From: Oopsacas minuta
Lineage: Eukaryota > Animalia > Porifera
NCBI GenBank assembly: GCA_024704765.1
Contig: JAKMXF010000112.1
Coordinates: 1-20,527, forward strand
Direction of reading: 5' to 3'
DNA length: 20,527 nucleotides
Shown one piece after another: positions 78-19,351 of the stretch (within the stretch, counting starts at the first letter, position 1; every line of letters starts with the position of its first letter). The position numbers and the translations under genes were made by a program. Under the pieces are notes generated by a model, which searched no databases, was not told the DNA's origin, and worked only from the letters and a program-made list of their open reading frames with translations.

Positions 78-275
78 TGGTTTCATATCAAACGGCAAAT
101 CTTTTCGAGTGCCCCTCGTAACTATTATACTAATTTCTCTTGTCATATTTGCGAAGATCAGCCTTCTACTATTATTTTGGACGGCATAGAAATGGGAACT
201 ATCAAGAACTTTCCGGACGATTCAAATCATGTAGATGAACCACAAAAACTTCTTATCATACCAGTGACAGCGTGA
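78..275 (+). pseudogene. Possible relic of a KDZ (Kyakuja-Dileera-Zisupton)/HMGXB3-like transposase segment
   Basis: A stop-to-stop frame contains FSCHICEDQPSTIILDGIEMG (135-197), which resembles the F-x-C-x2-C-x3-P-x2-hh-x-DG-x3-G pattern I recall from this family. Not confirmed by a search. Confidence 0.3.
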
Positions 276-1982
276 AACTCCACCCTAATCTATTGCAGTA
301 TAGCAAAGTTATGAAACGATGTACTTATTCGCAAACTATCAATTTTAACAATCCCTAGCCACTTGGGCTAAAATAAAATATTTCATGTTGTTTGATTTAA
401 ATAATCCAAATTAATAGTCTCTCTCATCTACTATCAGTCAAAAGAAGCTAAAAGAAGTGATTAAAAACAAATATCTAGTGAATATATGCCGCTCTAACTG
501 ATGGTTGAGAACAGAAGTCGAATGCTTCTCTGTTATTCATTATTGCAATAATGTAAGAAAATCAAAAGAAGGAAAATTAGAAAAATGTGAACAGGTCTAG
601 ATAGAATTGAAAAATGGTTACCGTCGCGTCATTTCGCGGCCCTGGAAATTGTGTTAGATTACAGCTAATGGATTAGCTTTCATTTAAAAGTTTAAAATGA
701 TTCGCCCGCGATTGCCCACGATATATTTCTGCACTATATCTACAAAATAAATTCGTCCGACACACCGAAAACTAATGGAAAGTATTTTGCAAATTTTCTT
801 AGTCGACTGAGAGCCAAGCTCTGATAAATGAAAGAAATTCATCTAAGTGCATATACTCTACATTGAAATAGCAAAATTTGCTTTACTGTCACTAGTCTAG
901 CATTTTTACCACAGTACACTTGTGTGGTTACTACAAATATCAAATGAAACTTTTGGCCTCAATAAATATACATTCTATTAGAGAAGAATTACTCAACTAT
1001 CTAATGACATTGAAGTCTCTAAATTTGGCTGCCTACGTTTTAGAGGGCGAGGAATTTAGCTAAAACAAAATTATTCAGATCTGAGCAAAATTTTACCCTA
1101 TTTCCACTCATTTGCCCACTGTGTACCTCGAGGCGCAATGCGACGATCTAAGGGGCCCGTATAATATAAATAATCAAAGCTACCGTTAAATTTAGATATT
1201 CTATGAATCCATAATTTTTACAGCTCTAGAAGTACCGATTGCTTAGCTAATAAATATTTAACATCTAAGAACAATAGAAATATTACAGATGACATAGTGC
1301 TATATAATGAATATTTTTCATTTATTTCCAGCAAAAAACTATAACCAATATAAAAATTCTAGAACAGTACGAAGGTGTAGAATTTTTCTCTTTCGAAAGG
1401 TGTGAAAATTTTGACACCTTCTTTTCATAATTTTTCCTAGAGTACAGACAAAGGTTAGACTAGTGTGACCGCTGCAACTATAAACCGAACGGACCAACTC
1501 CTATTCATGACTACCAGAACTGGACTGGACGGATCTTTGTAAATCACGAACCCGACAGATATAGAAATATTACGGACCGGACAGCTGCAACAATATTATG
1601 TGGGTTAGCAAAGTAGACTGAGGTATTCTACACAAGTGCGAATAGCGACCCTAACAATGCCTAACTAATGGAAGGGCTCCGCGGAGTCCCAACAATTGAA
1701 CATGGAGTCCGCAGGTGAAAGAGGTTTAGGACCACTGTTTTACACAATAACAACGAAAGTTAATCCAACCAGCATTAATTCATTAAAAGAAGCAGAAAAG
1801 TATTAAAGCAAGCATTAAACAAGACAAATTACTTGCATTTCATTAAAAATCATATAAATCTAGAGTTTCTGATAAATCATTTCAAAATATATAAGTTGAA
1901 AGTGTTAAATTATGTAAAACCCAGAAGACTTTACAATTCAGTAAAAATTACAATAGGCTGTATGATCATGATATGTATTCAT

Positions 1983-3554
1983 TCACTTCTCCAACTCACG
2001 CCAAATAGTAAATACAATAGTATCGCGGTCGTATTCATTCGATTTCGAAGGTATTAGCTTTTTTGGGTTCCTCAGAATACTAAGTCCTTCGCCTAAAGCA
2101 GCAAGTAAAATGCTTTCGGAGTAAGCTCCTTTCGAAGCAAATTTGAAGTTCTTGGTGTTGATAGGGAAAAACGAATTCCTATTAAGACACCACTCAATCT
2201 CTGATGGTAATTGAACAATATGCCTCACGTTACCCAAGAACCACCTGTACACAGAGTGAATTTCTCCATTAACATTATAGCGTATAATACATCCATCACT
2301 TGTACCGACATATAAACGTTCTTTAACAGCTAATAAAGATTTGATCGATATCCTTGCAGAATTGTCAGGGGTATTGATTGCATTAGCTATGTTAATGATT
2401 GAAGGCTCAGAAATGTTATCTATATCCCAACAAACAATAATAGAACGATTCATTACAGAAGTCCATACTTTCGTAATAGTTTTTTCTTCATCTTGGTAGG
2501 TTGCACTGGTGATATGGTGTAGTTGTTGTTCAATGTAATTTGATTGAAGTTCTGTTAACCGATACTTGTATTCTTTTTGTATCGGGAGATGAACTATAGT
2601 AAGTGGATTTGGGATATTACCACGTGTGCACCATATTTGAAGTTCATTGTTCTTTCGAATGGTATGGACACGGTTGATGGCTGATGCTATAGGATGTGGA
2701 GACAAATGACAGGTTAAGTTTGTGGTTAATCCCTTGCTTTCCAGGTCATCATTTAACCAGAAAATATCACCTAAGCTCGTAGTAGCAATGACACAATTCC
2801 ACTCCTTCAGATGTTGTAGGTCAAGTATATACATATTAGCCTTTACGTTCGTAGGGTCTCGAGCTAAAGCTTTAAAATACGGTCTTGACTTATGATTTGA
2901 ATTTAACTGCAGCTCCCGCATGTCAGGATATATCACAATTTCTCCTTTATCTGTACCTAGCCACATACTATTCTTAATAATACAGATAGCGTTAACTCGG
3001 GATTTAAACAGCTCTTTGTCACATTCATATAGTTTGATAGACATGTTCTGATCAGAATTAATCGACAGGAATGACAGGCAGCGCTCATCACTGTCTTTCA
3101 ACAACTTATCATATGATACGAACATCTGACAAACATGTTCACAAGTATAATTCTCAGCCATCTCTCCCTCAGACATTATCAAATCATCTAATCCTTCAAA
3201 CTTGGTGTTTATGTAGGGAGATTGAGCTGGTATGTGTGAACTCTCATTCAGTTGGCCTTGGATGGATGGACTGGCATTATGTAGCATCCTCGTTTTGTGT
3301 GAATACGCGTGAATTCCAGCACGAAAAGATGTTACACGATTTTTAGATTTTGTCTCTAAACTCTTAATCCTATGAGGAGGCATTGTACCCTTGCCAATAT
3401 CTATGCAGTTCATAGATATTTCTTTCTCATTAATAACATCTTGCTTCTCAAGAGAATTAGAATGTCCTCTGTTCAATTGTATCCCTCCAGATTCTAACAT
3501 TTTCCAACAGCTATCCAACGTGGAATCTGATGAAGGCGAAACAAATTGGTTTAC
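1983..3554 (-). CDS. LRRK-like terminal exon F: Ser-rich linker plus WD40-like beta-propeller
   Basis: Acceptor catttactttag|GTA at 3554 is in frame with the 511-aa ORF; stop TGA at 1983-1985. Propeller-like strands such as VNAICIIKNSMWLGTDKGEIVIY and IKSLLAVKERLYVGTSDGCIIRY. The WD40 call rests on pattern and position, not on a profile search. Extra exons in intron 3555-7316 cannot be excluded. Confidence 0.8.
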   Translation of the reverse strand, partial: VNQFVSPSSDSTLDSCWKMLESGGIQLNRGHSNSLEKQDVINEKEISMNCIDIGKGTMPPHRIKSLETKSKNRVTSFRAGIHAYSHKTRMLHNASPSIQGQLNESSHIPAQSPYINTKFEGLDDLIMSEGEMAENYTCEHVCQMFVSYDKLLKDSDERCLSFLSINSDQNMSIKLYECDKELFKSRVNAICIIKNSMWLGTDKGEIVIYPDMRELQLNSNHKSRPYFKALARDPTNVKANMYILDLQHLKEWNCVIATTSLGDIFWLNDDLESKGLTTNLTCHLSPHPIASAINRVHTIRKNNELQIWCTRGNIPNPLTIVHLPIQKEYKYRLTELQSNYIEQQLHHITSATYQDEEKTITKVWTSVMNRSIIVCWDIDNISEPSIINIANAINTPDNSARISIKSLLAVKERLYVGTSDGCIIRYNVNGEIHSVYRWFLGNVRHIVQLPSEIEWCLNRNSFFPINTKNFKFASKGAYSESILLAALGEGLSILRNPKKLIPSKSNEYDRDTIVFTIWRELEK

Positions 3555-6500
3555 CTAAAGTAAATGTTAGATCAATCACAAAAGTAACTTTTCATGTAAT
3601 GTTGAGACCCGGGATAACGATTTGAAATACAGTCTGGATCACTTATTATTAACCCGTTTACTATGAACCAGAACTGAAATGGGTCAATGGGTCATGGGTC
3701 AGGATTTATAGATCATGACCCATCAATAATCCTACGCATATACAGTAGAACTCAGATTTAAAGTACCCTCAAGGGAGAGGAAAAAATTGTACGTTATAAC
3801 CTAGTTCTACTGTACTAAATTTGGAAAAAATAAACTATTCTGCTTATTTATATGTATCATGATTGAAGTAAAAACAAATGTACATTTGCGATTTGATCCC
3901 CCTCCTTGTGACACACCTTTGGAATCAAAAGGAATGCGGTGGCCCCGTCATATTATACACCCCTAGGTAACGTGATGTTTGAACAGCTACATTTTAACTG
4001 TGTTTTCTTGGGACTTAGGATGGGTCATGTAGGTCATGGGTCAGAGACCCCATCTGTATGAGAGACTCTATCTGTATGCAATACATTCATGATTTGGCCA
4101 TAGCATCGAAGGTTGTCAATTTATGGTGAATATTTGCAAAAATATGCCATTCATGGTCACTACTATAACTCTGGGACTCGCGAACTATATAATGACAAAA
4201 TTTTGATATTTTGTACAGCAACATCCTTCGATTCCATGGTATCTATTTTAACCGTATATGTATTAATCTCCTCTCACAGAGTTCCAAATCTAGAGCATTT
4301 TTCTGACACACAGCCAGGGGACAAAAGTATTCGACCACACAATATATTGTCATAAATTGTATACTCTTTCCCGCTCCTATATATTGTGTAGTCTATATTC
4401 GTAGCTGCTATCTAGTAATTTGTATAGAATAACATATGTTTTTCAAGAATTTCAAAAAAATATTTTAGATTGACACTTTTTGAAGGTGTTAATTATTAAT
4501 AATTATTAGATAATTATTGATAATTAAAATATGTGGTAATTCAAAACCTATTAAGAATCTATAATTTCTGACTTGATATTTGAATTCTACGTAGGCGAGT
4601 TACCCCAGATTGAAATTTCCAATCGGATTGAGCAATTTTTACCAAAGTTATAGATGAATTTCAATTTTGTGCCATTTGTGCCACCTTTTGCCCAAGGTGG
4701 CACAAGTGGCCGCTACCAAGAGGTTATTTTGGAATTCAAGGGTTAGCATAGTCATATCATTCGAAAATATTAGTTCGACTTATTCCTCCTAACCCTAGTT
4801 GATTTCCTTGTAGTGGCGCTTTTTCCTGCCACCTGTGCCACTTTTTTCAAAAAGTGGCACAAGTAGGACAAATTGAAATTCTTTTATAACTTTGGTAAAA
4901 ATTGTTCAATCCGATTGGAAATTTCAACCTGGGGTAACTCGCCTACGTAGAATTCAAATATCAAGTCAGAAATTATAGATTCTTAATAGGTTTTGAATTA
5001 CCACATATTTTGATTATCAATAATTATCTAATAATTATTAATAATTAACACCTTCAAAAAGTGTAAATCGAAAATATTTTTTTGAAATTCTTGAAAAACA
5101 TATGTTATTCTATACAAATTACTAGATAGCAGCTACGAATATAGACTACACAATATATAGGAGCGGGAAAGAGTATACAATTTATGACAATATATTTGTG
5201 TGGTCGAATACTTTTGTCCCCTGACTGTATTTGCTAAATAAGCAATAAGATGACGTTATTTGGCCTGAAAATAGTTTGTAGATATAGACTGTGAGCAATG
5301 TAAATATCAATAATACATTTATTAGATCAAAAATGTACCGTTTAAACTTTAAATTTTATCGCAACTAATAGAATTCGTTAGCAATTGGCTTGACGTATCC
5401 CTGGTCCAAATCCTTAAATTAGCACAATTGCCTTAGCATATAGAATGCTATGGTACAGCTAATATTATTGTTAATTGCTATTTTCGATTTCCAATAAGAT
5501 AATGCAGTCAGGATTGCATATTGTGAACAGACTGAAGACCATGGTACCAAAGACCAAACTGTATTTTAGAACAAGAAAAATTCCACCACATAGTGAAAAT
5601 ATCAGGACTGGAACTTCATAATACAGGACTTAAAACTATTATTCACAATGGATGGCGTGTATTACCATATTTTCGAATATATTGTCCAAACACTATTTAA
5701 GATATGCCCCTCAAATGTATTACCAACATATATAAATACGGTAACCGCGTTCACTCTCGTCTTCTCAAATTTTGCTGTGTCATCATCTGACTACCTAATA
5801 AGCTATTTTTGATGATTTGGAGTATTTTCCGAGGCTGTTTTAACCCTTAATAATTAAGTTAGATCTTCGATATCTACATGGTATCATGATGCATGCTGAT
5901 ACATTTCTCTGTTGCTATGCAAATATACATGAACTGATTCTAGCCATACCTGGAAAAATATTGATGCTAGACCTTAATTCTGATATTAGTGTATCCGCAA
6001 TAGGTGATTCCTATTCATGAATAAACATTTGCGACATCTAACTCAACGATTAATAAGTTATTACATCATATATAGTGAATAACTTATCAATAGTAGGAGT
6101 CAGATGCAAAAATGGATTATTCATGAATAAGAAGTCAGATATGGCGGATATACTAGTTTCAAAAGTAAAGGTCTGGCATCAATATATTCCAGGTATGACT
6201 AGAATCTGTTCATATACCATCAAAAATTCCATATTTTTTCGAAACAACCACATACAGGGCGTTACCCAGGCGTATGCGGCGCTTACAGGCGGCTAAATTT
6301 GGGCAAATATATCTCTATGGGCAGAAACTCCTATATCATAATGCAAAATATATAGTCTAGGCGTATGGCCCTGAGATCCTGGATGAAACTCTGACCACAT
6401 GATAACATGATATCATGTAAATATCGTTGGTCTAAAATAAATATTTATTCAGGGTTAAAAACAGCCTCGGAACATACTCCAAATCATGTAAAATAGCTTA

Positions 6501-9500
6501 TTAAGTAGTCAGATGATGACATAGCAAATTTTGAGAAAACAAGAGTGAACTCGATTACCGTATTTATATATGTTGGTAATACATTTAAGGGGCATATCTT
6601 AAATAGTGCTTGGACCATACATTCGAAAATATAGCCATCTACTCGCCATCCGTGGTACTAAGAAAAACATGTCAGTTGTAAGCCCTGTACTACGAAGTTC
6701 CCGATCAGATTATCCATTTAGTGACTTTTAGCCAATATTTGACCACTTTTAATGTCTATTAGTGCTATAGTTTAACTGGACCAAATCCAACTTCGTAGCA
6801 CCGGGCCTGATCAAATGACTGTCATTGAATGACGTATTATAATTGAATAAACTTATCATAATGACAGTTATTAAATACATTTCTCTTTGGTTTGCTGTGG
6901 TGAAGCAAGATGCCAATGGTGCATGGCGTTGTTAGCAACCCCAATAATCCAGATATCGCTAGCATCTCCAGTAGTCAGGGGTTGCTGCTAGGGCTACTAA
7001 CAATTGCCCTGGTTTACCAAATTATCGGATTATGCAGGTGAATTTGTATTGTCGGAAGCTATTTCAGAAATAGACATTGTCGGATTATACAGGTGTCAGT
7101 TTATGCTGGTTCCACTGTATAATATAACTCTACAATTTGTAAACGAAATATCGACAAGATTGGGTGGGGCGTACGCCCCCAAGCTCCCTCCTTACGTACA
7201 CCACTGGCTCTGGGTGAGACCCGACCAATAAGAGTCGATGGCAACTCTACATAGTTATATTACAGTTTAGAAACTAGATAATAAATACAACCACACATAT
7301 AGAGGTAATTAATTACCTTCTCAAGTAGCGGTTCAACTAAAAGATCCATTGAGTAATGAGTTCTGATGATAGACTTGAATTGACCTAATTTGATTGCAAC
7401 ATGGAGCTGAGCGTTACGCATCTCAGGGGATTGTATCAAATCTACAAGTTCACGACTATTAGTTCGTTTTTCTGGGTCGTGTTCTACACACATTCGTACT
7501 AAAGAGTGCAGCATTAGAGGGAAATAATGCTTCTGTTCTTCAAAGTATATCAATTCTGAATAGTCAGCAGGGTTAGTAGTAACAGTGAGTAACTGATATA
7601 TAATAATTCCAACAGCGTAAATGTCAGCCTAACAGAGAAATTACAAGAATAAGTAACATGGGTTGAGTGGGGAAATTTTGTCGACAAAAAATAACGAGAA
7701 AGATGATAGAATATCCACAGATTGAATTGATATTGGTGAATTTATTATGTCAGGATAAGTGAAACGTCGTCAATTAGTGGCTGAGTGGCTGGCTAGCATA
7801 GACTACAATAATTAAGGACTGTGGGCTGCAAGCTCAGTCCTGTAACTTATGTCCATTGTGTTTTCTTGATATCCCCTAATTCGCTAAAGTTAGACTACGA
7901 AAATATATTATTGTTGGATAGGAAGTCATATGTTGGGAGTTGATTAATCAAATGGCCTTACCCAAGGGTGTTCAAACTTTTAAACCTACGGGCCACTTTA
8001 AAAATTAGACTCCGCCTTACGGGCCACAAATCATAGATCGCCCTTGGCTTTAGTTTAATCAAATTTCAAGCTATACTATTTGACATCAGATTGTATTAAA
8101 AATGGATTCTACTTGTAAATTCAGTTTATAGACTTAAATTATAATGTTTTAAATGGATTCGAATCATTTGATGTCTCTATTGAACTCAGCTTGTTTTCTA
8201 GCAATTGGACAATAGTACTAAACCTAGATTTGGGGTATACTATGTACTGTCCATACTAAAGTAACATTGCAGAAAATCTCGGCATTTCAATTTAGGTTCT
8301 GCCTCATAGGTTATACTTGTCATGCTCAAATAATTGATAGAATTCGTAAATGCAAACTATAGTTACCAAATACTTTATTAATACTGGGAACATTAATGCA
8401 TTTGTAGTGTATCTATAATTATTTCTATATGGTGTTTGAAAAAACAATTATTATCTGACTTCCGAGTTAATGTATGAAATTTCAGATATAAACTTTTACA
8501 CAAAATATTAAAACTTATCATGATAAAGTTTATAATATTTTGTGTAACAGTGTATATCGAAAATTCATACATTAACTCGGAAGTGAAAGATGAAATATTC
8601 AACGTTATACGGGCCATTACAAGCCATATCAAACAATTGTAGATTTTATCGGGGGCGCTGCTTCAGTTCAAATTTCAAGATTGTCATTAGTTAGAATCAA
8701 CTTTTAGTCTATTGTAACAAGTTCGAATCGAATTCAGACTGTTGTTACAAGTCAGAATCTACTTTTCCGAGATATCGCGTGGCAAAACGAGGCCCGGCGA
8801 AAACTTTTTATTGCAGTAATTATAAACCCGTACCATTGGAAGGGGATAAGGTATTTAGTTCACTACCTTATGGATCTGGGAGTTTCATTTGTACTCGTTA
8901 TTAAGCTACCTAGGGGCGGGGATGTGGACTTCATGGTAATTTTGTGTTTGGATAGACTTTAGTTGGACTAATTATTAGTAAACTCTGCAGAATGGCGGAC
9001 CATGGATTTTTTGTTTTTAAACTTGTGACCACAGTCTAAAAATCCATTCTGCCTTGTGACAACAGTCGGAAAATCGATTCTAACTTGTTCCAATAGACTA
9101 AATATCGATTCTAACTTGTTACAATTCAGAAATTTCTAACTAATGACAACCTTAAAATTCGAACTATGCATGCACCAATGCTTACTGGACAAAGTTTTTG
9201 GCATATTCCTGAAATTCTTTAGCGAATAATGGTTGATAATTTGTTGTTCTACAAATGTGCAATATATTTAATCAGGCAAAATGCACCGTTTCTGCCCTCG
9301 GCCGAAACAACATCCCTAGTCCAAAATTCAAATTTTCCCTATGTTCTTATGTATAGTTGGCTATCAGGTAAGAAAATCTGACTGAATGAGTCGTTACATA
9401 TGGATCCTCATTGTATAATAACACATTTCTCATGTCTAACTCAAATTGGAAGCGATATTTTGACATTATCAACATAATGTGGAAAGGTGTGAAAAACCAC

Positions 9501-12500
9501 ATAATTTCATTCTACAAATATTTCAGGTAAGGCCAGTTGATCAATCAACTCCCAACATATGACTTCCTGCCCAACAATAATACATTTTCGTAGTCTAACT
9601 TTAGCGGATTAGGAGATACCATGGAAACACAATGGACATAAGTTACAGGACCGAGCTGGCAGCCCACAGTCCTTTATTATTGTAGTCTATGCTGAGTAGT
9701 AATAAATTTATTTTTCGTCAATACAAACGGTAATAACGTTATCTTGCAAGAGGTATAAATTCAGTAGAATACGTGATTTTATATAGAGTAGAATTCGGAT
9801 AAGACCTATCCTTCGGGAGCAAAAATTTGTACGTACTATACTAACTTAAGTACGTCTTAAACTAATATTCTTCCTATACAATTAATAGCAAAAGAATAGA
9901 ATATCCGTTTTGGAGAAAAGTACGTACTAATCGAGTTCTACTATATTAGATAGTAAACTATTCCCATGATATATTATAGAAAAGTATTCGTAGGAACGAA
10001 TTTATTGGAGTGGGAAGTAATTAAAAGATAAAATACAAAGTTACTTACGGTTGGTTCAATAGATAGAGTAGTCTTAGAAACAACTTCTGGTGCCATATAG
10101 CCAGGTGTACCCATTACAGCTCCCAATTTATTCCCCATATTTGAGTACATATATACGAGTCTATAATCTGCGATTTTTAAACGTACACGATCATGTTCAA
10201 TGGGGTCATTTACAGAGGGAAGAGGGTAGCTCCATACCAGTAAATTGTTAGGTTTTAAATCCATATGTATAATTTTTAACTCCTCGTGTAAATAAAGAAG
10301 ACCAATACATAATTCTTCTAAAGTTTTCAGAATGATGTCATACTGGATGTAAGAGTTATGATCTATATATTTTTCTAATATATCCTTCAAACTTCCTAGA
10401 GGGGCCAATTCAAAGATTAAATAAAAATAAGTTTCGAAACCAACACTCAATAGTTGTACAACATTAGGATGTTCTAACTTGATGCAAAAAGACATTTCAT
10501 TTAGTATAGCTGAATGCATCTCAAGTAACTCTTGCTCGGAATATTTTTCTTCCTTAAGGAAATATAGAAAATTTTCAGCTTTTTGGTCAGGATATTTTAC
10601 AAGAAATTTGAGAGCAACTGTCTCATTTTCATCACATGAGCTAATTTCTGGGCCTCCATCATCTTCATTAATAATTGTATGAATGTTGCAAAGAGTAGTT
10701 TCTAAAGGGGTCAATGTTCCTTTGCACACTAAACCAAATCCACCTACACCTAAAATATCTTTAGAAAATATTTCCATTTTGTAATTTTTTCGAGCATTTT
10801 TATTCATGTGAACAAAATAGAGATCAGGGCAAACAATCATAAAATTCATCCAATTATGTATTGGACATATTTTCCTATTTCCTCCGTAAAAGAAATTAAT
10901 ACATTCTTCAGATGAGAATATATTTACTCGCTTTTTCCCATAGTATACATAACTACCACCCATGTTACTTACGGCCCTGATTGATGTTTCTATTTCGTCC
11001 AAGTCTTCGATTCCTCTTGAGCATTTCTGGCAGGGAGTATAGAAAATCAAAGGATCTCTTTTACTATCTTCGGTTGATACAAAATGAGCTATATTCTTGT
11101 ACCAATTGTTAAGGAGAGTCTTATAATGAGCTGAGAGCTTATGCAACAATATAGCAGCATCTGGAAGCACGTTCTTAATGTTATCAATAATTTGAATTTG
11201 ATCAGGGTGGCTAAGTTCCATAGAATTTTCACAAGAATTGCTTGTATCAATACTAAATACAGACCAAACTAGGAGATTGACGTAAACATGTATGGAAAAA
11301 TAATGTTTTATTAGACCAGGAATTTTGTCATAGCGATTAATTTTGCTTGATTCGACCAATAAAACCTCAAACAGAGTACAACCTTTGTAATGTATTTCAA
11401 AGGTAGATTTTGAGAGAAAATATTTGATACTTGTATATGATTTGGGGAGCCAAATATTAAATAGTTCTTGTATTGTCTTATCTCCTCTTAGTTGTGAGAT
11501 AAAACGAGCCCAAAACCCAGAAGGAACATGATCAAGAAACCATAATCTCTCTAAGTGGTATAAATCAAAATCAATATTTTCAAGATTCCTAAAGTCCATC
11601 ATTGTTCGCTCAGAATAAATAGGACGGTCAGGTAAAAATGAAGGAACTAAAATCTGATCATTGTCAATTTTCAAAACTACTTCACATTTTTCCAATAATT
11701 CAACATATGTATCAAGATGTGTATAAGAGACAGGTCCATTCACAAAATTGCTGGTTTTTATCATTCAAGTACGATTTTAGTTGATATCTATCAACAATTC
11801 CGGTATCGAGTAATTTAAGTAAAAAGGTTTCATTATTATTCTTAGATTGGTAAGTAGGCCGAATGTGATGATCTCGAATTAGAATTGTCATACTCTTAGA
11901 TAACCACTGTGGGTCCAAGAAATATATTTCTCTAAGGCGAGTTGTCTCAAAATTTAAAACAAGTCCTAAATGATGAAGATACTCCAAACCATCTTGCAAT
12001 AAATCTTTTTCCTTGAAAAGCTCTGTCCCAATCGTAGTCCACAGTTCCTCAAAATTAACAAAAGGAGGCAGATTATTTTTCTTCATTTCTTTAGCTTTCA
12101 CAACGATACAAGTTTCTAACCTTTTGTAAATTTCTGGAACCTTCTGGTTAATGAACGCATTCGGGTGTCTGGCGTCTAATTTGGGCTTGTATGTAACCTG
12201 ACTGTTTGTATTCCCAACATGAAGATGTGAAGCTACTTCGAATATAGCCTTCTTCAAGCCTTTTACTTGTTCTTTATTGCTTGCTATTAGTCCAGGTTTA
12301 CATGTTATAAAACATATATCTGCTATCCTTGGAAATGGACCTTTATCTGGGTGATATTTTATCAAAATCTCTTGAGCAAGATTCTAAAATAAAATGATGA
12401 AATTATTAGAAAGTTAGCAGAATGCATAGCCTACCATCAACCTCGAATTTTTGGACTAGGGATATAGTAGTGTACCGTGTACGGTAAGTATTATAATAGT

Positions 12501-15500
12501 ACAGTGCATGTCGGTTATGAGAACATCGTCGGGAACTGGACATAATGTTCTTATATCCAACATGTACTTATAACCGGTATGTAGTAAATTATGGGTGCCG
12601 GTTATGAAAACATTCATTTAAACAGAATTGGATTTAAGAACAGTATTATGGTAAACTGTTCTTATTAACTACTGTAGAATTTATACAAATTCTGCAGACA
12701 TACCGGTAATAAGAACCAATTAGACTACTACTCTAAGAGTGTTCTTATAATAGGTAAATGCTATTGGGGTATATGGCAACCGTTTTCCAGTGAAATGTTC
12801 ATATATCCAGCATGTTCTTATAACCGGGAATAATTCCATGTAAATCAAGTTTGGTTCTTATAACCGGCATAATTTTGCCATAATAAAGTTGGCAGGTTCT
12901 TGAGTTACAGTAGTGACCATGGATGACAATAATTTGTTAATATCCATTTATAAGTCGAAACCATCAATGATATAACAAAACTCACGATTTATAGTATATA
13001 CCCGATTTTCGGTACCTTTATAAGACAGTTTGATATGATATCTACAAGGATTATTGCATAGTCATCAATAATGCCATATATGGTAATATTCAGGATTGCG
13101 TCATTATCGTAGGAGATATCATATCAAAATGTACTACGTATAAGGGTATGGGAAATCGGTATATACTATAAATCGGCAATAGTGAGTTTTGTTATATCAT
13201 TGAGGATTTTCGAATTATAAATGGAAATTGACAAATTATTGCCATCCATGGTCACTACTGTAACTCAAAAACCTGCAAACTTTATTATGACAAATTATTT
13301 AAGTTTCATCTCTACATCATTTCGTACATTAACTCTGAAATCAAAGATGAGATATTTAACGTTTGATAGCTCATCAAAAATTGGGCAATTTTCTCCAAAG
13401 AATGCTTATTAATTAAGCAAAAGAAATTGACACATTATTTGGTTAAATCAGACTTGGTAACAAGAGGACTTGAATTGAACTTCAAATTTTAATAATGAAC
13501 AGTCATGAATCAAATTTGAATATATTAAACGATTTAATCAAATATCTGCTATTAACGAGTCGGATTCAACTTAAATCCGACTTGGTAAGTAAGTAGACTC
13601 TAATTGAACTTTTGATAATGAATGGGGGATAGATAAAAAAACATACTTGCAAGCTTTCTTGCTCAATTTCATCAATATGTGTCCCAACTAGTAACACAGG
13701 ACAACCAGGCGCCATCATCTCCAAGCTCTTAAGCCAACCTTCCAGTTCTGATATTCCCTTCTGTCTGTCACAGGCTCGGAACACTAAGAGATAGACAGAA
13801 CGAGGAGAGAGAAAACAGTGGAGGGTGGGATAATAGTCTTGTTGCCCAGCAAAATCCCATACTTCAAACTCGATCTTTTGTAATTTGTCGTCTGGGTTAA
13901 TTAGATCCCATTTGTTGATGTCAATACCCTCAGTGCTGTGTATATCATTAATTCTTTTCGATTGTAAGGTTTTAAGGAGGGTAGTTTTTCCTGTACCATG
14001 ATATCCCACTAATGCTAATTTAAATCTACGGTTAAGATGGCACTTTGTCCCAATAGATCTCAAAATGTTGAGGACAACAGGAAGGGATACTTCTTCATGA
14101 ATCCCCTCCAATTTTAAGTTGTCTCTACGTAGTGACTGTAACTTTTTATAGATCTACACAAAAAGAAATCGTTATGTACTAATTTAAATATCGAAATTGA
14201 TATCTCCATATTCGATTACCCCTGGCAAACGGTTCTCATATATATTGTATATTTTTGCTGATTCTACCAAACATACTGGTAATACGAACAAATTTTACTA
14301 CTTTTCAAAGAGTGTTCATATAACAGGCATAAAATATATTGGGGTATATGGCAACCGGTTTCCAGTATAATGTTCTTATAACAGGTTTAAACTATATGGA
14401 TTAGAGTACAAAAGATTCCGTGAATCAAGTCAAGGTTCATATAACCGGCATGTTCTTATAACTGGTATCTACTGTATCGGAATTAGAATCTACATCCTCG
14501 ATTACCCCTGACTACCCGCGAAAAAGTGATAAAATTACACTTCATACAAATTCATACTCAAAATGTACGTGTACCAATTTTCATGTTGATAGGGCTGTTA
14601 GATTTAGCAAGGCCGCGGGCTGGCACTAAAAATCACTACTCTATAAAGGATGTAATTTAAAATCAACGAGTCTTTGGCTCGTCGCTTTGCGATGAACTCA
14701 GCGTATTGCGCCTCGAGGTATTCAACAGACAAACAAACAAACAACATTTGAGATTTAATAATATTGATGTTTTTTACATTCAGGCTCAGCATACTTGATT
14801 ACTTCAGTATGGTCGTTGAAAGTATGATTCTACAACAATATTGAAATTTGTTTACTTTATATTCATAAAAACAACAATAAATTTACATATGATTAATCCA
14901 AAAATGTGAAAATCGGATTCAGCATGTTCGATATAATAAGTGAAGTTTTAGTGAATTCTATTTACTTGCTTGATAAACACGATAAATACATAGTTATGCG
15001 ACAATTTCAAATTGCATACCATAAATCCTTTCCTTGACAACGGACAAACAAACAAACAAACAAACAAACAAACGAACAGACAGACAACAATTGAGATTTA
15101 ATAAAATAGATTCTTCTAAACATTTAGAATGCAGTAAATGAGGAATCAGAATATTCTCGCGGTACACTGAGCGATGGAGTCCTATTAGCCACGACGAATC
15201 CTTAAACCATGAAATTTGTTTACACGAAATTTCCAGATCTACAGGATATAAAAGTAATAGAAAATTGCAAGAAGACTAAGTAACCTTAAGATTCCCGAGT
15301 TCTTTAGGTAATTCTCTTAAATTTGGATTGTCACTAATATCAAGGGTTTCGAGGTTCTTTTGGTAACCAATGCGAGGAGGAAGTCCTAGCAGATTGTTTT
15401 CGTGGAGGTGGAGATATTTGAGGGAAGGAAAATATGGAATTTCTTTATCATCTTCCTCTCCTACATCATAGAGTGAAATTATGAGTAATATAGATAGAAA

Positions 15501-18500
15501 AAATCTATGTTAAAAAAGTTATGATGGACACACTGTCTACATAAACATTTGGTCATAAGTTACCTATGATATGTACGTACATAGCAGATCATAAATACAT
15601 ATAGATACTTATGCGTAATCAATTTTACATATTTCAGTGCAAACCTTTATCGCCATAATTTTTCTGTATAAACCCATTCAAAATTATAACTCCTCTCGTG
15701 GAATCCAATCACAAGCCATGGACCTCTTGGGATTCCATAGATCAGGGCGGTACAAGCGGTGCGGCAGGTTCTACGAGCGGCATATACAGTAGACTCTGGT
15801 TAATACGTACACCGGGGGGCTGTCAAAATTCCTACTCCTTATCCGGAGTACTATTAACCGAACTAATTTACATCGAAAAGGCATCGAAGGGGACTGATAA
15901 AGTGTACAAAATTGTACTTCTTATCCGGAGTTACGCCTTAGTCGTGTTCGTATTAACGAGACTCTACTGTAGTTCCAAAAATTGCAGGGCTGTGTTACAC
16001 CATAGACTACTATACATATAATAGAAATAGGAAAGTAGCCGAGCAACGAAAAAATGAGAGGCCAGTTTGATAAAGCGCTCACGTATCGTTCTTCTAATCG
16101 AATCTATTACGATAATTTGAGAATCCCCATAGTTGAAACTCCGTCAGAGAAAAGCCCGTTCCTTCATCAGGTTATATCCTTTATGTAAAGTGTATCCTTA
16201 CCCCTCGTGCTTCGCGATTAGAATTTGTTGCCATTTTGTTAAATAAAATGAAAACAGTGCACAAAGCGATTTATTCTGTGAACACAGATAATTTAAGTAT
16301 TAACACATGATAGTGTTAATACATAAGAAGCAGTATGTATTAGCAAATTAGTGCTAATTAGACCAGACTAAATATCCGGTGACGAATATTCGGGCAAAAA
16401 TTCTACCATTCCGGCACACTTATCAAACTGATAATATTTTATCCAGGGGCGGGCATATCTGCCACAACATTGACATTAGAACTGCACTAAATGTGAATTA
16501 AAGTGAATAAAAAGAATTACAGGGTGTCCAGAAATTAATGTCACCTTACATTATGTTAAGAATAAGAAAATACCAGTGTACTATTGAATTCATTTATTTC
16601 CCAATATAACCACCCTCCAATTCTAAACATTTTCTAATTCTATTGGGCATCCCTACAGCTAGATTCTCGAGGCAAGATGGATCACTGTTGGACCAGTCTG
16701 TGGGGTGGAGCACCATCTTGCATCAATGTGGCCTTCAACGGGTCTGCTATCATTCTCTTTTCGAGTATTGTCCCTGTTTTTCGTTTGCGGTTTAGTGCAT
16801 CTTTACAGGTTTTGGTCAGTATTTCAGACACATAATAAGAAGCATTCACAGTTCGTTTGGGTGGCACAAGGTGTAATTCTGATAGTGTCTGATGGCTCAT
16901 CATGCCCCACACCATGATTTTCTGCGGGAATTTAACCGTTTCCTGAGGGAGAATATCTGAAGAATCATCACACCAGACACGATCATTTTGATGATTGGAT
17001 GAATGGAAAAGTTCGAAAGGTGACTCATCTGTCCAGAGAATACATTTCCAATCATCTACTGACCACACACTATACTTTTGACAGAATTCCAGTCTGTTTT
17101 CCTTTTGCTTTCCGGTAAATTTTGGCTGTTTAGGTCGTTTGAAGGCCTTAACTCCCAGGGATTTGGATAAATATGAGTGCACAGTGCTCTTGGATATAGA
17201 ATACCCTTTAGATTTCAGTTTAGCACTCAATCTTCTTGTGGATTGGTGACGTTTTCCAAGAGATTTGCCAATAATCATCTTGGCCACCGGATTCAGCAAG
17301 GATAGGTGACCGGCACCAGGTTTATGGCCGAGGCTCTGGTTGCTGATAAATCTCTTCCACCACCGTTTGAACGTGCGAATATCCTTCCCTATCCTACTAG
17401 CAACTACTTTCTGAGTTAGTCCACCTTCCAGCATGCCTATTGCGCGTGTACGAACCTCAGTGCTCATAATAATAACGTTAATCAGTTGAAAATATATAGT
17501 AAAATGAAAATCGAAGCAAAAGTCGCAATAAAAGTAAATTTTATAATGTATTTCAGTAAACAGAGATGAATACTGCATAAAATTTACGAAATAGTGTATT
17601 AAGGCATATACGTACTAGTGCTAATCAATATATGGTCAGTTAAAAAAAATATTATAAGGTGACAACAATTTCCGGACACCCTGTATAAGAATCGTGCACT
17701 TACCAAGTATTATGTTTTCTAAATTTTTGTTTCCATTTAAATATAATTCGCTAAGAAAGAAGAATTTCTCATGTCGATGTTTTAGATGATCACAGAGACC
17801 TTGATGTACTAGATTAATAGAAGAGGCAAAACAGGGAGTGTTCTCTTCAGAAAATATTATTTGCTTAATCCCACAACCAGAGTAATCAAGATATCGGAGG
17901 AACTTCGGCAAAAAGCGCAAGTCAAGGTAGGTAATATTTTTGTTATCTTTAACATTTAACCTAAGCAGTTTCGGAGTTATACATACTAGCCCATTCGGCG
18001 GGTTCTTGAGTTGATTTCCAGATAGCTTAAGCTCTCTTAAGCGACAATAATCCTCACCCACCTTAATGCCCTCCAAAATTTTGGTTTGGTTTGTGTCTTC
18101 CTGATCACCTATGTTGTAGCTAGCGCAGTCTTTACAGGGGTACTCAATTTCTTCAATTTTGTTGTCTGCTAAATCTAAATTCATTAGTTTAAATAACATC
18201 CAAATTTCAGATGGCACTCTCTTAATCTCGTTGTTTGACATATTTAGATCAGAGGTTTCTTTTAGATACTGAATGTATCGTGGGATAAAAGTCAATTTAT
18301 TTTTTTGAAGATTGACATCTCTCAACTTAGTAGTGAAGTCTTTAATACCTAATTCATCAAATTTATTATCTTCAACAAAATCTAATTTGTTCATAGCGAG
18401 AGAAAGTTTTTCTAATTTCTTATGGCAAATTATCCATAGAGGGATAATCCCCTCGAGACAGTTTGAACTGATATTTAATACTTTCAACGAGGGCAATGGT

Positions 18501-19351
18501 TGTTTAGAAGTTTGTGACATATTTGCAAAGAAGGGTACATCTGGAATATACTCTATATCATTGTTGAGAAGATTTAGGTGTGTGATCTCAGTTAGGAAGA
18601 GGAGACTGTCTGGGATTCTGTCTAGACTGTTTCCACTTAAATCAACCGAGGCTACAAACTTAAATGTTAAGTTCAATTCCAGATTTTCTCGAATATATTC
18701 CGGTACTTTAGGACACCTATCAAACTTGAAATTGTCATCGGTAATCATATCTAAGATATTTTCTAAACACCAAGTATTGAGATGTCCCTCACGGAAGTCC
18801 ATTAAAAGACGCTTATTAACATCATTATTACCACGCCTTCTAATCCTTTTCTTAGTAACTCCAACCATATTGCAAATAAGAGGCTTAACATAATCTTTGT
18901 AGCCCAACTCGAGAGCGAACTTAAGCCCACGACAGGAGTCAACAACTTCTAGAGATTGATGATATACGATTGAGTAAAACAATTCATCCCACTGAATAAT
19001 AAGAACTTCTATGAGAGGAGAGGCAGTAAGATCTTCCATATCTTCCCATATTATTTCTCCATATTCACGGTCATTAGGCTGATGTAGAGTCAATCTTTTG
19101 AGGAGCACTTTCTCTGTATTATAGGTTGCTTTCTTATACTCTTCTATTGCCCATTTAGGTGCATATTTGAATCCCATCTCTATCAGTTTCAAGGAAGCTC
19201 GCTTAGTAATTAAATCAAAGCTTGTAACACGTAATTCACTGAAATTGTCGTTTCTAAGTAAGAGTTCGCAAATACGCTTATTCTGAAATCTAACAGCGTG
19301 ATGTAAAGCAGTGTATTTGGTTCCTGGACATGTAAGGTTGATATCAATAAC
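1983..19351 (-). CDS. LRRK: ROCO/LRRK-family protein (ANK-LRR-ROC-COR-kinase-WD40-like), 6 exons resolved, 5'-incomplete, at least 2176 aa
   Basis: Six segments join in frame across canonical GT-AG introns (intron phases 1,0,0,0,0). Exon lengths are 1648+176+507+2316 (after removing the 19-bp adapter)+312+1572 = 6531 nt = 2177 codons including TGA. Domain order matches LRRK1/LRRK2-type ROCO proteins. Orthology to LRRK1 versus LRRK2 cannot be decided from this window. Confidence 0.93.
3743..3812. mobile_element. 70-bp mini-MITE
   Basis: TA|CAGTAGAACT ... AGTTCTACTG|TA. It shares an AAAATTGTAC-like internal motif with the 9786 and 15787 elements. Confidence 0.7.
4311..5227. mobile_element. 917-bp foldback element / large MITE with Tc1-like termini
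   Basis: Inverted arms of about 410 bp (4311-~4720 and ~4805-5227). The outer ~340 bp differ at only about 7 positions by eye. Termini CAG(C/T)CAGGGGACAAAAGTATTCG; TA on the right flank (5228-5229), CA on the left. No ORF. Confidence 0.9.
5610..6701. repeat. Degenerate nested palindrome: outer arms ~5610-5893 and ~6405-6701, inner palindrome ~5928-6214
   Basis: Outer arms: CACTATTTAAGATATGCCCC..GTATTACCAACATATATAAATACGGTAA (~5691-5744) is the reverse complement of ~6555-6609. Inner arms: CATGAACTGATTCTAGCCATACCTGG..GATGCTAGACCTT pairs with AAGGTCTGGCATC..CCAGGTATGACTAGAATCTGTTCAT. Confidence 0.85.
7317..7628 (-). CDS. LRRK-like exon E: kinase subdomains IX-XI
   Basis: Acceptor tttctctgttag|GCT at 7628 gives ADIYAVGIIIYQLLT (subdomain IX) and MCVEHDPEKR (subdomain XI Arg). 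Donor AAG|GTAATT at 7316. Confidence 0.9.
7963..8030 (+). mobile_element. hAT (Buster/Charlie-like) terminal fragment
   Basis: CAAGGGTGTTCAAACTTTT followed by two ACGGGCCAC subterminal motifs resembles hAT ends of the CAGGGGTGTCCAAACT...CGGGCCAC type. The partner end was not found. Confidence 0.45.
8458..8584. repeat. 127-bp imperfect palindrome centred on ATCATGAT (8518-8525)
   Basis: ACTTCCGAGTTAATGTATGAA pairs with TTCATACATTAACTCGGAAGT, and TTACACAAAATATT pairs with AATATTTTGTGTAA. Segment 8564-8606 matches 13321-13363 at 37/43. Confidence 0.8.
8665..9165. repeat. ~500-bp element with inverted arms built from ~30-bp subrepeats
   Basis: AGTTCAAATTTCAAGATTGTCATTAGTTAGAA pairs with TTCTAACTAATGACAACCTTAAAATTCGAACT. 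The motif ATCGATTCTAACTTGTT recurs at ~9073 and ~9104. Confidence 0.7.
9786..9943. mobile_element. 158-bp degenerate MITE of the CAGTAGAACTCG family
   Basis: TA|GAGTAGAATTCG ... CGAGTTCTACTA|TA, with internal AAAATTTGTACGT. Confidence 0.6.
10049..12383 (-). CDS. LRRK-like exon D: end of ROC, COR domain and kinase subdomains I-VIII (interrupted by a 19-bp adapter)
   Basis: Acceptor ttttattttag|AAT at 12383. COR motifs LEYLHHLGLVLNF, YFLDPQWL, LLEKCEV..ILVPSFLP and VPSGFWARFI. Kinase motifs GVGGFG, VALK, NEM (alphaC Glu), HMDLKPNN, DYR and GTPGYMAPE. Donor ACC|GTAAGT at 10048. The two track ORFs 11712-12365 and 9974-11764 fuse when 11715-11733 is removed. Confidence 0.9.
11715..11733 (+). other. 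Tn5 mosaic end / Nextera adapter sequence embedded in coding exon (probable assembly artefact)
   Basis: Exact 19/19 match to AGATGTGTATAAGAGACAG. Deleting it gives ...TGT GAA TGG ACT GAT ACA TAT GTT GAA (CEWTDTYVE) on the minus strand and joins the two overlapping ORFs. Confidence 0.96.
12502..12870. mobile_element. Degenerate MITE copies rich in the GTTCTTATAACCGG motif
   Basis: About 10 copies of GTTCTTATAACCGG variants in both orientations. TA|CAGT at 12500-12505 and ACTG|TA at 12671-12676. Segment 12689-12870 is homologous to 14261-14451. Confidence 0.7.
12869..13298. repeat. 430-bp palindromic (foldback) element; a further one-arm copy lies at ~4115-4215
   Basis: 12869-12960 is the reverse complement of 13208-13298 (CCATGGTCACTACTGTAACTC core), and 12964-12985 pairs with 13182-13203. 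The centre is near 13080. A related CATGGTCACTACTATAACTC lies at ~4151-4170. Confidence 0.88.
13647..14153 (-). CDS. LRRK-like exon C: last LRR/cap and ROC GTPase G1-G4
   Basis: Acceptor tttttgtgtag|ATC at 14153. Motifs: P-loop GYHGTGKTT (13980-14006), switch I STEGIDI, G3 WDFAGQ, G4 VGTHID. Donor CAA|GTATGT at 13646. Confidence 0.93.
14261..14474. mobile_element. Right part of a MITE of the same GTTCTTATAACCGG family
   Basis: Shares TATTGGGGTATATGGCAACCG.TTTCCAGT with ~12762-12792 and ends GTTCTTATAACTGGTATCTACTG|TA. Confidence 0.72.
14723..14760. repeat. (CAAA)n-containing dispersed repeat, copy 1
   Basis: CAACAGAC-(AAAC)3-AACATTTGAGATTTAATA; same flanks as copy 2. Confidence 0.7.
15038..15102. 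repeat. (CAAA)n-containing dispersed repeat, copy 2
   Basis: CAACGGA-(CAAA)7-CGAACAGACAGA-CAACAATTGAGATTTAATA. Confidence 0.75.
15285..15460 (-). CDS. LRRK-like exon B: two LRRs (absent from the ORF track)
   Basis: Acceptor tgatgtag|GA at 15460 matches the phase-1 donor of exon A. It translates GEEDDKEIPYFPSLKYLHLHENNLLGLPPRIGYQKNLETLDISDNPNLRELPKELGNLK. Donor AAG|GTTACT at 15284. Confidence 0.9.
15787..15969. mobile_element. 183-bp MITE (pogo/Tigger-like CAGTAGA ends)
   Basis: 21-bp TIRs CAGTAGA(C/G)TCT(G/C)GTTAATACG (19/21 identical), with TA on both flanks. Confidence 0.85.
16520..17683 (-). mobile_element. Tc1/mariner-superfamily DNA transposon, 1164 bp, internally deleted, in LRRK intron A-B
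   Basis: 29-bp TIRs CAGGGTGTCC(A/G)GAAATT(AA/GT)TGTCACCTTA at 16520-16548 and 17655-17683 (26/29 identical). TA target-site duplication at 16518-16519 and 17684-17685. Encloses a transposase ORF. Confidence 0.95.
16594..17467 (-). pseudogene. Truncated Tc1/mariner DDE/D transposase
   Basis: Likely start MSTEVRTRAIG at 17467, followed by HTH regions, WTDES (first Asp) and MQDGAPPH (second Asp), then TGA at 16682-16684. The WPxxSPDLNPI(E/D) motif is absent. A typical C-terminal tail (DPSCLENLAVGMPNRIRKCLELEGGYIGK*) continues in another frame to 16594. Confidence 0.9.
17704..19351 (-). CDS. LRRK-like exon A: ankyrin repeat plus LRR block
   Basis: Acceptor tttatttag|GTT at 19351. The frame is open for 53 codons upstream of the ORF-track start and gives an ankyrin consensus (DINLTCPGTKYTALHHAVRFQNKRICELLLRN). 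LxxLxLxxNxL repeats follow (VDLSGNSLDRIP, LKVLNISSNCL, LMNLDLADNKI, LRELKLSGNQL). Donor CTTG|GTAAGT at 17703. Confidence 0.9.

Follow-up and report, generated by a model that had tools for sequence, protein, structure and literature searches.

How does an engineered Tn5 end come to lie, letter for letter, inside a coding exon of a glass sponge? The window analysed here is the whole of scaffold C112 (20,527 bp) of the Oopsacas minuta assembly, which comprises 61,460,524 bp in 365 scaffolds. At positions 11715-11733 of its forward strand the window carries AGATGTGTATAAGAGACAG, which agrees with the Tn5 mosaic end of the Nextera adapter at 19 of 19 positions, with 0 mismatches. Even with 3 mismatches allowed, the window offers no second match to the 19-mer, and 100 shuffled sequences contained no match at all (0/100). 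The chance expectation for the 19-mer, calculated from base composition, is 2.8e-7 per window, in agreement with the order of 1e-7 given in the original prediction, which had been made from the letters of the window and had named the site an exact, engineered mosaic end. Both the match and its identity hold: the 19-mer is the mosaic end (ME) of hyperactive Tn5, an engineered derivative (PMC3046479), and the Nextera Mate Pair junction adapter contains it as one of its two halves (10.1101/443036). On the minus strand, which is the strand of the gene, the 19-mer reads CTGTCTCTTATACACATCT, and the 38-nt Nextera Mate Pair junction is made up of CTGTCTCTTATACACATCT followed by AGATGTGTATAAGAGACAG. 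We take the 19-mer to be a synthetic hybrid mosaic end, neither the natural outside end of Tn5 nor its inside end. From sequence comparison, and with a probability of roughly 0.95, we read the 19 bases as a leftover Tn5 mosaic end of a Nextera Mate Pair library and not as sponge DNA.

The insertion is bare on both sides. It lies between ...CATATGTATCA on one side and GTCCATTCAC... on the other, with no 9-bp direct repeat at these flanks (TATCA on one side, GTCCATTCA on the other) and without an adjoining second half, CTGTCTCTTATACACATCT, of the mate-pair junction. Read-through in a paired-end library would be expected to continue from the mosaic end into one of the Nextera primer tails, CCGAGCCCACGAGAC or GACGCTGCCGACGA; a search of the window for these tails and for TruSeq sequence found none. 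In all three respects (no 9-bp duplication, no second half of the 38-bp junction, no primer tail) the site is as the prediction had described it. The window contains no N bases, and the site bears no sign of a former gap. We know of no normal tagmentation product in which a lone mosaic end stands between adjacent genomic bases without a 9-bp duplication.

The interrupted gene and its deposited protein

On the minus strand, the 19-mer marks the exact place where two open reading frames (ORFs) overlap out of frame: one at 11712..12365 (217 aa), which ends in NQQFCEWTCLLYTS before a stop, and one at 9974..11764 (596 aa), which starts with MIKTSNFVNGPVSYTHLDTYVELLEKCEV. The gene strand at the site reads ...GAA TGG AC, then CTGTCTCTTATACACATCT, then T GAT ACA TAT GTT..., and taking out the 19 nt leaves a single frame, CEW-T-DTYVELLEKCEV. 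The minus-strand reading thus confirms the false frameshift that had been proposed for this exon, and the expectation that automated annotation would be broken by it was met in the GenBank protein LOD99_11144 (942 aa), which halts within the adapter and ends ...CEWTCLLYTS. The adapter encodes the last six residues of this protein, CLLYTS, as well as the third base of the preceding T codon, while the stop codon TGA at 11714-11712, 1 nt past the adapter, is a product of the frame shift. This false C-terminus, consisting of the codons T-C-L-L-Y-T-S and the stop, occupies 11712..11735 on the minus strand and corresponds to the protein end NQQFCEWTCLLYTS.

LOD99_11144 maps by tblastn to four exons on the minus strand: 19177-17699, 15464-15282, 14153-13647 and 12383-11715, the last of which covers residues 720-942 with 100% identity. 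The first exon (17699..19177) encodes leucine-rich repeats (LRR_8, E 3.8e-16); the second, a short one (15282..15464), covers residues 491-551 with 97% identity; and the third (13647..14153) encodes the Roc GTPase (PF08477, E 6e-23). The exon interrupted by the adapter falls into two parts. The upstream part (11736..12383, minus strand), which is the last exon of the 942-aa model, carries COR-A (PF16095, E 5.5e-10, residues 96-169 of a 210-aa piece). The downstream part (9977..11714, minus strand), which begins with the third base of the split codon AC/T at 11714, encodes the rest of COR and then a protein kinase (Pkinase, E 7.9e-24), and is colinear with a second copy of the gene and with seven paralogues, with no gap at the junction. 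By the Pfam match, the kinase domain belongs to the continuation of 579 aa (9977-11713), which is missing from the deposited model.

In Pfam searches run on each of the ORF pieces separately, LRR_8, Roc, COR-A and Pkinase all scored above their cut-offs and follow one another in that order on the minus strand, which is the canonical order of LRRK/ROCO kinases. The interrupted gene is an LRRK-type ROCO kinase, and its database version is one without the kinase. Farther downstream, an ORF at 1986..3518 on the minus strand shows a weak match to the LRRK2-type WD40 beta-propeller (PF23748, Beta-prop_LRRK2; E 4.9e-6, 26.2 bits versus a cut-off of 26.9); it is a probable 3' exon, and we infer that it belongs to the LRRK-type gene once the false stop is removed. 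Two further features of the gene are recorded here for their own sake. Its activation-loop motif (10160-10168, minus strand) reads DYR, unlike the DYG found in the second copy and in six paralogues. Its first intron harbours an ORF (16685-17578, minus strand) with a Tc3-type transposase DNA-binding domain (PF01498), of which a 95% copy is present at C329:211562-212545.

The second copy of the gene, 92% identical, lies on another scaffold, at C321:1252113-1253156. It is colinear with the window and lacks exactly the 19 bp: where the window reads TATCA, the 19 nt and GTCCATTC, the second copy reads ...TATCAATCCATTC..., and one ORF of 646 aa passes through the site uninterrupted. In an alignment, this ORF and the seven paralogous proteins all read CEW or CDW, then I, M or V, then D or E and TYVELLE, with one residue at the split codon and no gap; the 19 nt are therefore a clean insertion, with nothing lost or duplicated. 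Judging from these homologues, the 19 bp would almost certainly be absent from the DNA of the sponge. The 19-mer in the LRRK-type gene is a data error and not a biological feature.

Mosaic ends across the assembly

That other loci in the assembly might be affected too had also been foreseen, and a search of all 61.46 Mb found 44 exact copies of the 19-mer, 19 in forward and 25 in reverse orientation, where 8e-4 would be expected by chance and the reversed control gave 0. When up to 2 mismatches are allowed, the count rises to 59 copies against 2 for the control. The mismatches of the near-exact copies are mostly found in the two outermost bases at either end, a sign that these are truncated adapters. 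The exact copies are all solitary 19-mers: none of the 44 sites has a Nextera primer tail, a second junction half, a transposon body or an inverted partner next to it, and a target duplication of 9 bp or shorter is absent at 43 of them, the one exception lying within a tandem repeat. Neither TruSeq adapter nor the full 38-nt junction centre occurs in the assembly, only one half of the junction being present at every site.

The copies are associated with gaps. Nineteen of the 44 lie no more than 110 nt from an N, that is, within less than one read length, and eight adjoin a single N. Long N runs close to copies may in some cases not be assembly gaps, a doubt that does not touch the single-N cases. 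In the genome paper, 936 scaffolds were merged into 365 (PMC10280926), which implies at least several hundred joins in 61 Mb and hence a chance proximity to an N of well below 1%. Removal of the adapter restores long frames clearly at the window site only; at several others a long frame is present to one side of the adapter but not to the other. This mixed behaviour of the reading frames means that the sites are of mixed kinds and not all clean insertions. Sites L020 (C166:230909) and L025 are unique in the assembly, so that there is no empty-site copy with which to compare them, and site L004 lies in repeats and is hard to read. On scaffold C154, next to the adapter copy at 12573-12591, the 30 nt between the adapter and a long N run (L018:1520-1549) have a G+C content of about 60%, as against 34% for the genome; this stretch may be a chimeric partner from foreign DNA.

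Could the 19 bp nevertheless be a true part of the sponge genome, as the footprint of a transposon, a tiny intron or a recoding signal? All that speaks for this is that they are present in the deposited assembly. The sequence is that of an engineered mosaic end (PMC3046479), its copies are solitary, with no transposon body, inverted partner or 9-bp duplication, and they are tied to gaps. Nor does an intron fit, as the borders GT...AG are absent on the gene strand, where the 19 nt read CTGTCTC...ACATCT; the mean intron size in O. minuta is 341 bp (PMC10280926). Add to this that the 19 bp are missing from the 92% copy and from all paralogues, and the chance of a genuine sponge sequence becomes negligible. 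A real insertion in the animal is, for practical purposes, excluded.

Routes into the consensus

The O. minuta genome, about 61 Mb in 365 scaffolds, was sequenced using a Nextera Mate Pair library with 150-bp reads (PMC10280926); Nextera Mate Pair sequencing of this species is also described in the mitochondrial paper (PMC4520895). The assembly chain consisted of SPAdes 3.9, SSPACE, Pilon 1.21 and GapFiller 1.10, the last run with the settings -m 30 -o 2 -r 0.7 -n 10 -t 10 (PMC10280926). The mitochondrial paper, which is the source given for the Illumina data, reports adapter trimming by Cutadapt (PMC4520895). The proposal that untrimmed adapter had been built into the assembly is therefore right as to the adapter but too simple as to the trimming, which is on record. 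Since TruSeq sequence and the 38-nt junction are both absent, trimming evidently dealt with these two forms and would have missed lone mosaic ends alone.

The flanks of the 19-mer in the window are adjacent in the genome, whereas a mate-pair junction would join sequences that are kilobases apart. Such a jump across the adapter is absent from the window but occurs elsewhere, at C321:914179 versus 904277. Within C321:914160-914393 (L037:1501-1734), a single N separates two mosaic ends that point towards each other. The first of these is followed, up to the N, by 173 nt that reproduce C321:904277-904449, located 9.9 kb upstream on the same strand, at 99% identity. Just this 9.9-kb jump at C321:914179 is predicted by a mate-pair circle of roughly 9.9 kb in which one end, but not the other, comes from Tn5. 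Junction reads with a lone mosaic end existed, and at this site they extended the edges of a gap. The segment itself is a small misassembly built from a mate-pair junction read.

The same site bears on a different source of the adapter, namely read-through in a paired-end library of Nextera type. Every insert of such a library ends in the same 19-mer, and the genome paper does not name the kit of its paired-end library (PMC10280926). However, primer tails follow the mosaic end at 0 of the 44 sites, and the continuation of C321:914179 at a distance of 9.9 kb is explained only by a mate-pair circle. We therefore consider paired-end read-through quite improbable as the source, and derivation of the 19 bp from the mate-pair library very probable.

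The bases that adjoin the mosaic ends carry a trace of Tn5. On the 3' side there is a T at position 2 at 26 of the 44 sites (p=3e-4), accompanied by preferences for G at position 1, C at 9 and T at 10 (p=0.01-0.03); the sample behind these statistics is 44 sites, and T at 2, the strongest of the positions, was chosen post hoc. The preferences at positions 1, 9 and 10 agree with the Tn5 target consensus AGNTYWRANCT (PMC3046479). On the 5' side, the 44 sites show no base bias and no mirrored pattern. A biased 3' side next to an unbiased 5' side means that, of the two junctions, only the one on the 3' side is a true tagmentation site. Microhomology of the left flank to the start or end of the adapter was also considered and set aside: 9 of 12 bases match in the window, but the mean over the 44 sites is at background, and we take the match for a coincidence.

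The net length of the insertion differs from site to site. It is +19 nt in the window. At C166:510218 (L021), comparison with five other copies of a multi-copy element that spans the site gives a net gain of +16 nt. At C166:230909-230927 (L020), the adapter lies in frame within an ORF of more than 1,000 codons, to which it would add DVYKRQ, and the net change is a multiple of 3; a protein deposited from this locus would probably carry DVYKRQ without any frameshift to give warning. Such a spread of net changes would fit a course of events in which an aligner sets the first bases of the adapter on genome bases, matching or mismatching, and treats those that remain as inserted; a polisher would then accept the insertion where usable depth is low. 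A rare physical chimera would also be compatible with this variation, and of the two we find the computational route somewhat more likely.

It is possible, though we hold it the weaker case, that the physical route operated in the window, the assembler having faithfully copied a library side product that carried a scarless single mosaic end. Such a product might stem from one-ended strand transfer by Tn5, or from a polymerase that jumps, during strand displacement, from the 5' end of the mosaic end to a neighbouring 3' end. SPAdes, GapFiller (at -m 30 -n 10) and reassembly by Pilon all need real reads that run from flank through adapter to flank; moreover, the 3' flanks resemble true Tn5 cut sites, and molecules with a lone mosaic end were clearly present in the library, as the C321 site attests. 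Yet no known Tn5 reaction yields a 19-bp insertion without a 9-bp duplication, molecules that arise from single events should be outvoted at the reported coverage of 186x, and the spread of net insertions (+19 in the window, +16 at C166:510218, a multiple of 3 at C166:230909) fits absorption by an aligner at least as well as it fits chemistry. A bolder form of the idea is that the scarless insertions of +19 in the window and +16 at C166:510218 stem from a genuine but so far undescribed side reaction of Tn5 during mate-pair preparation, which sets a single 19-nt end between neighbouring bases and leaves no 9-bp duplication. We think this unlikely; if true, the reaction would leave predictable false frameshifts in any assembly made from such libraries.

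The reading that we prefer, a leftover mosaic end of the mate-pair library, has direct support on five points: the 19-mer is a mosaic end, it is far commoner in the assembly than chance allows, homologues lack it, the deposited protein is cut short, and a different site bears the mark of a mate-pair junction. The events would then have run as follows. Junction reads with a single mosaic end would slip past adapter trimming by Cutadapt and feed the reference-guided finishing that followed SPAdes, that is, SSPACE, Pilon and GapFiller. Adapter would thereby enter the consensus at about 60 places, some at gap edges and some inside continuous sequence. In the window, the outcome would be a scarless addition of 19 bp to the exon that runs from COR to the kinase, with a frame shift, a stop and the loss of the kinase half from the deposited protein. 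Both the escape from Cutadapt and the program behind the window insertion are what we infer from this pattern, and our confidence in any single software step as the source is low.

Relation to known systems, and other features of the window

Fragments of Illumina adapters in deposited assemblies are a documented problem (PMC13182109). The present case resembles known Nextera/Tn5 contamination in that the exact 19-nt ME occurs in many solitary copies in one Nextera-based assembly; it differs in that the window copy is an internal, scarless one that interrupts a coding exon in the reference genome of a eukaryote and has given rise to adapter-encoded protein residues. An internal match of 19 nt is probably too short for the screening thresholds of NCBI. 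The Nextera Mate Pair junction belongs to the library used here, has the 19-mer as one of its halves and accounts for the jump of about 10 kb at another site; however, the 44 sites hold one half only, with no 38-nt form, and the flanks in the window are adjacent. With genuine Tn5 transposition the site shares a Tn5-derived end and a Tn5-like target bias in the 3' bases, but the 19-mer in the window is of the engineered mosaic form and comes without a transposon body, a second inverted end or a 9-bp duplication.

The consequences reach beyond a single gene. O. minuta provides the reference genome for glass sponges, and the paper that describes it draws conclusions from the presence, absence and truncation of genes. 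The assembly holds at least 44 adapter remnants, and probably about 59. A protein of 942 aa that has no kinase and ends in six adapter-encoded residues circulates in NCBI and UniRef, and other adapter copies flag small misassemblies, such as the segment of 173 nt duplicated from 9.9 kb away. Counts of pseudogenes, domain losses and frameshifts in O. minuta should mask the 19-mer sites. The defect can be found by a search for the 19-mer and is easily corrected after a check of the reads. Knowledge of it is of use in quality control.

The similarity between the window and scaffold C321 extends well past the interrupted exon. Window positions 268-12250 match C321:1252113-1263605, much of the region being colinear, in reverse orientation and 90-92% identical. 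The two scaffolds may be the products of a recent segmental duplication, or else divergent haplotypes that were not collapsed; different libraries were made from different adults, according to the genome paper (PMC10280926). The C321 copy has a frame break of its own in the kinase domain (L032:3326-3335), where ...GFETFFF is followed by a stop and a new frame begins with MAPLGSL, while the window reads GFETYFYLIFELAPLGSL; this could reflect a pseudogene or another assembly error. Finally, the window contains, at 4310-5230, a repeat of about 920 bp that is missing from the C321 copy. More than 35 copies of it occur across the assembly at 95-99% identity, and its two strands match one another at about 90%, which makes it a foldback or MITE-like element.
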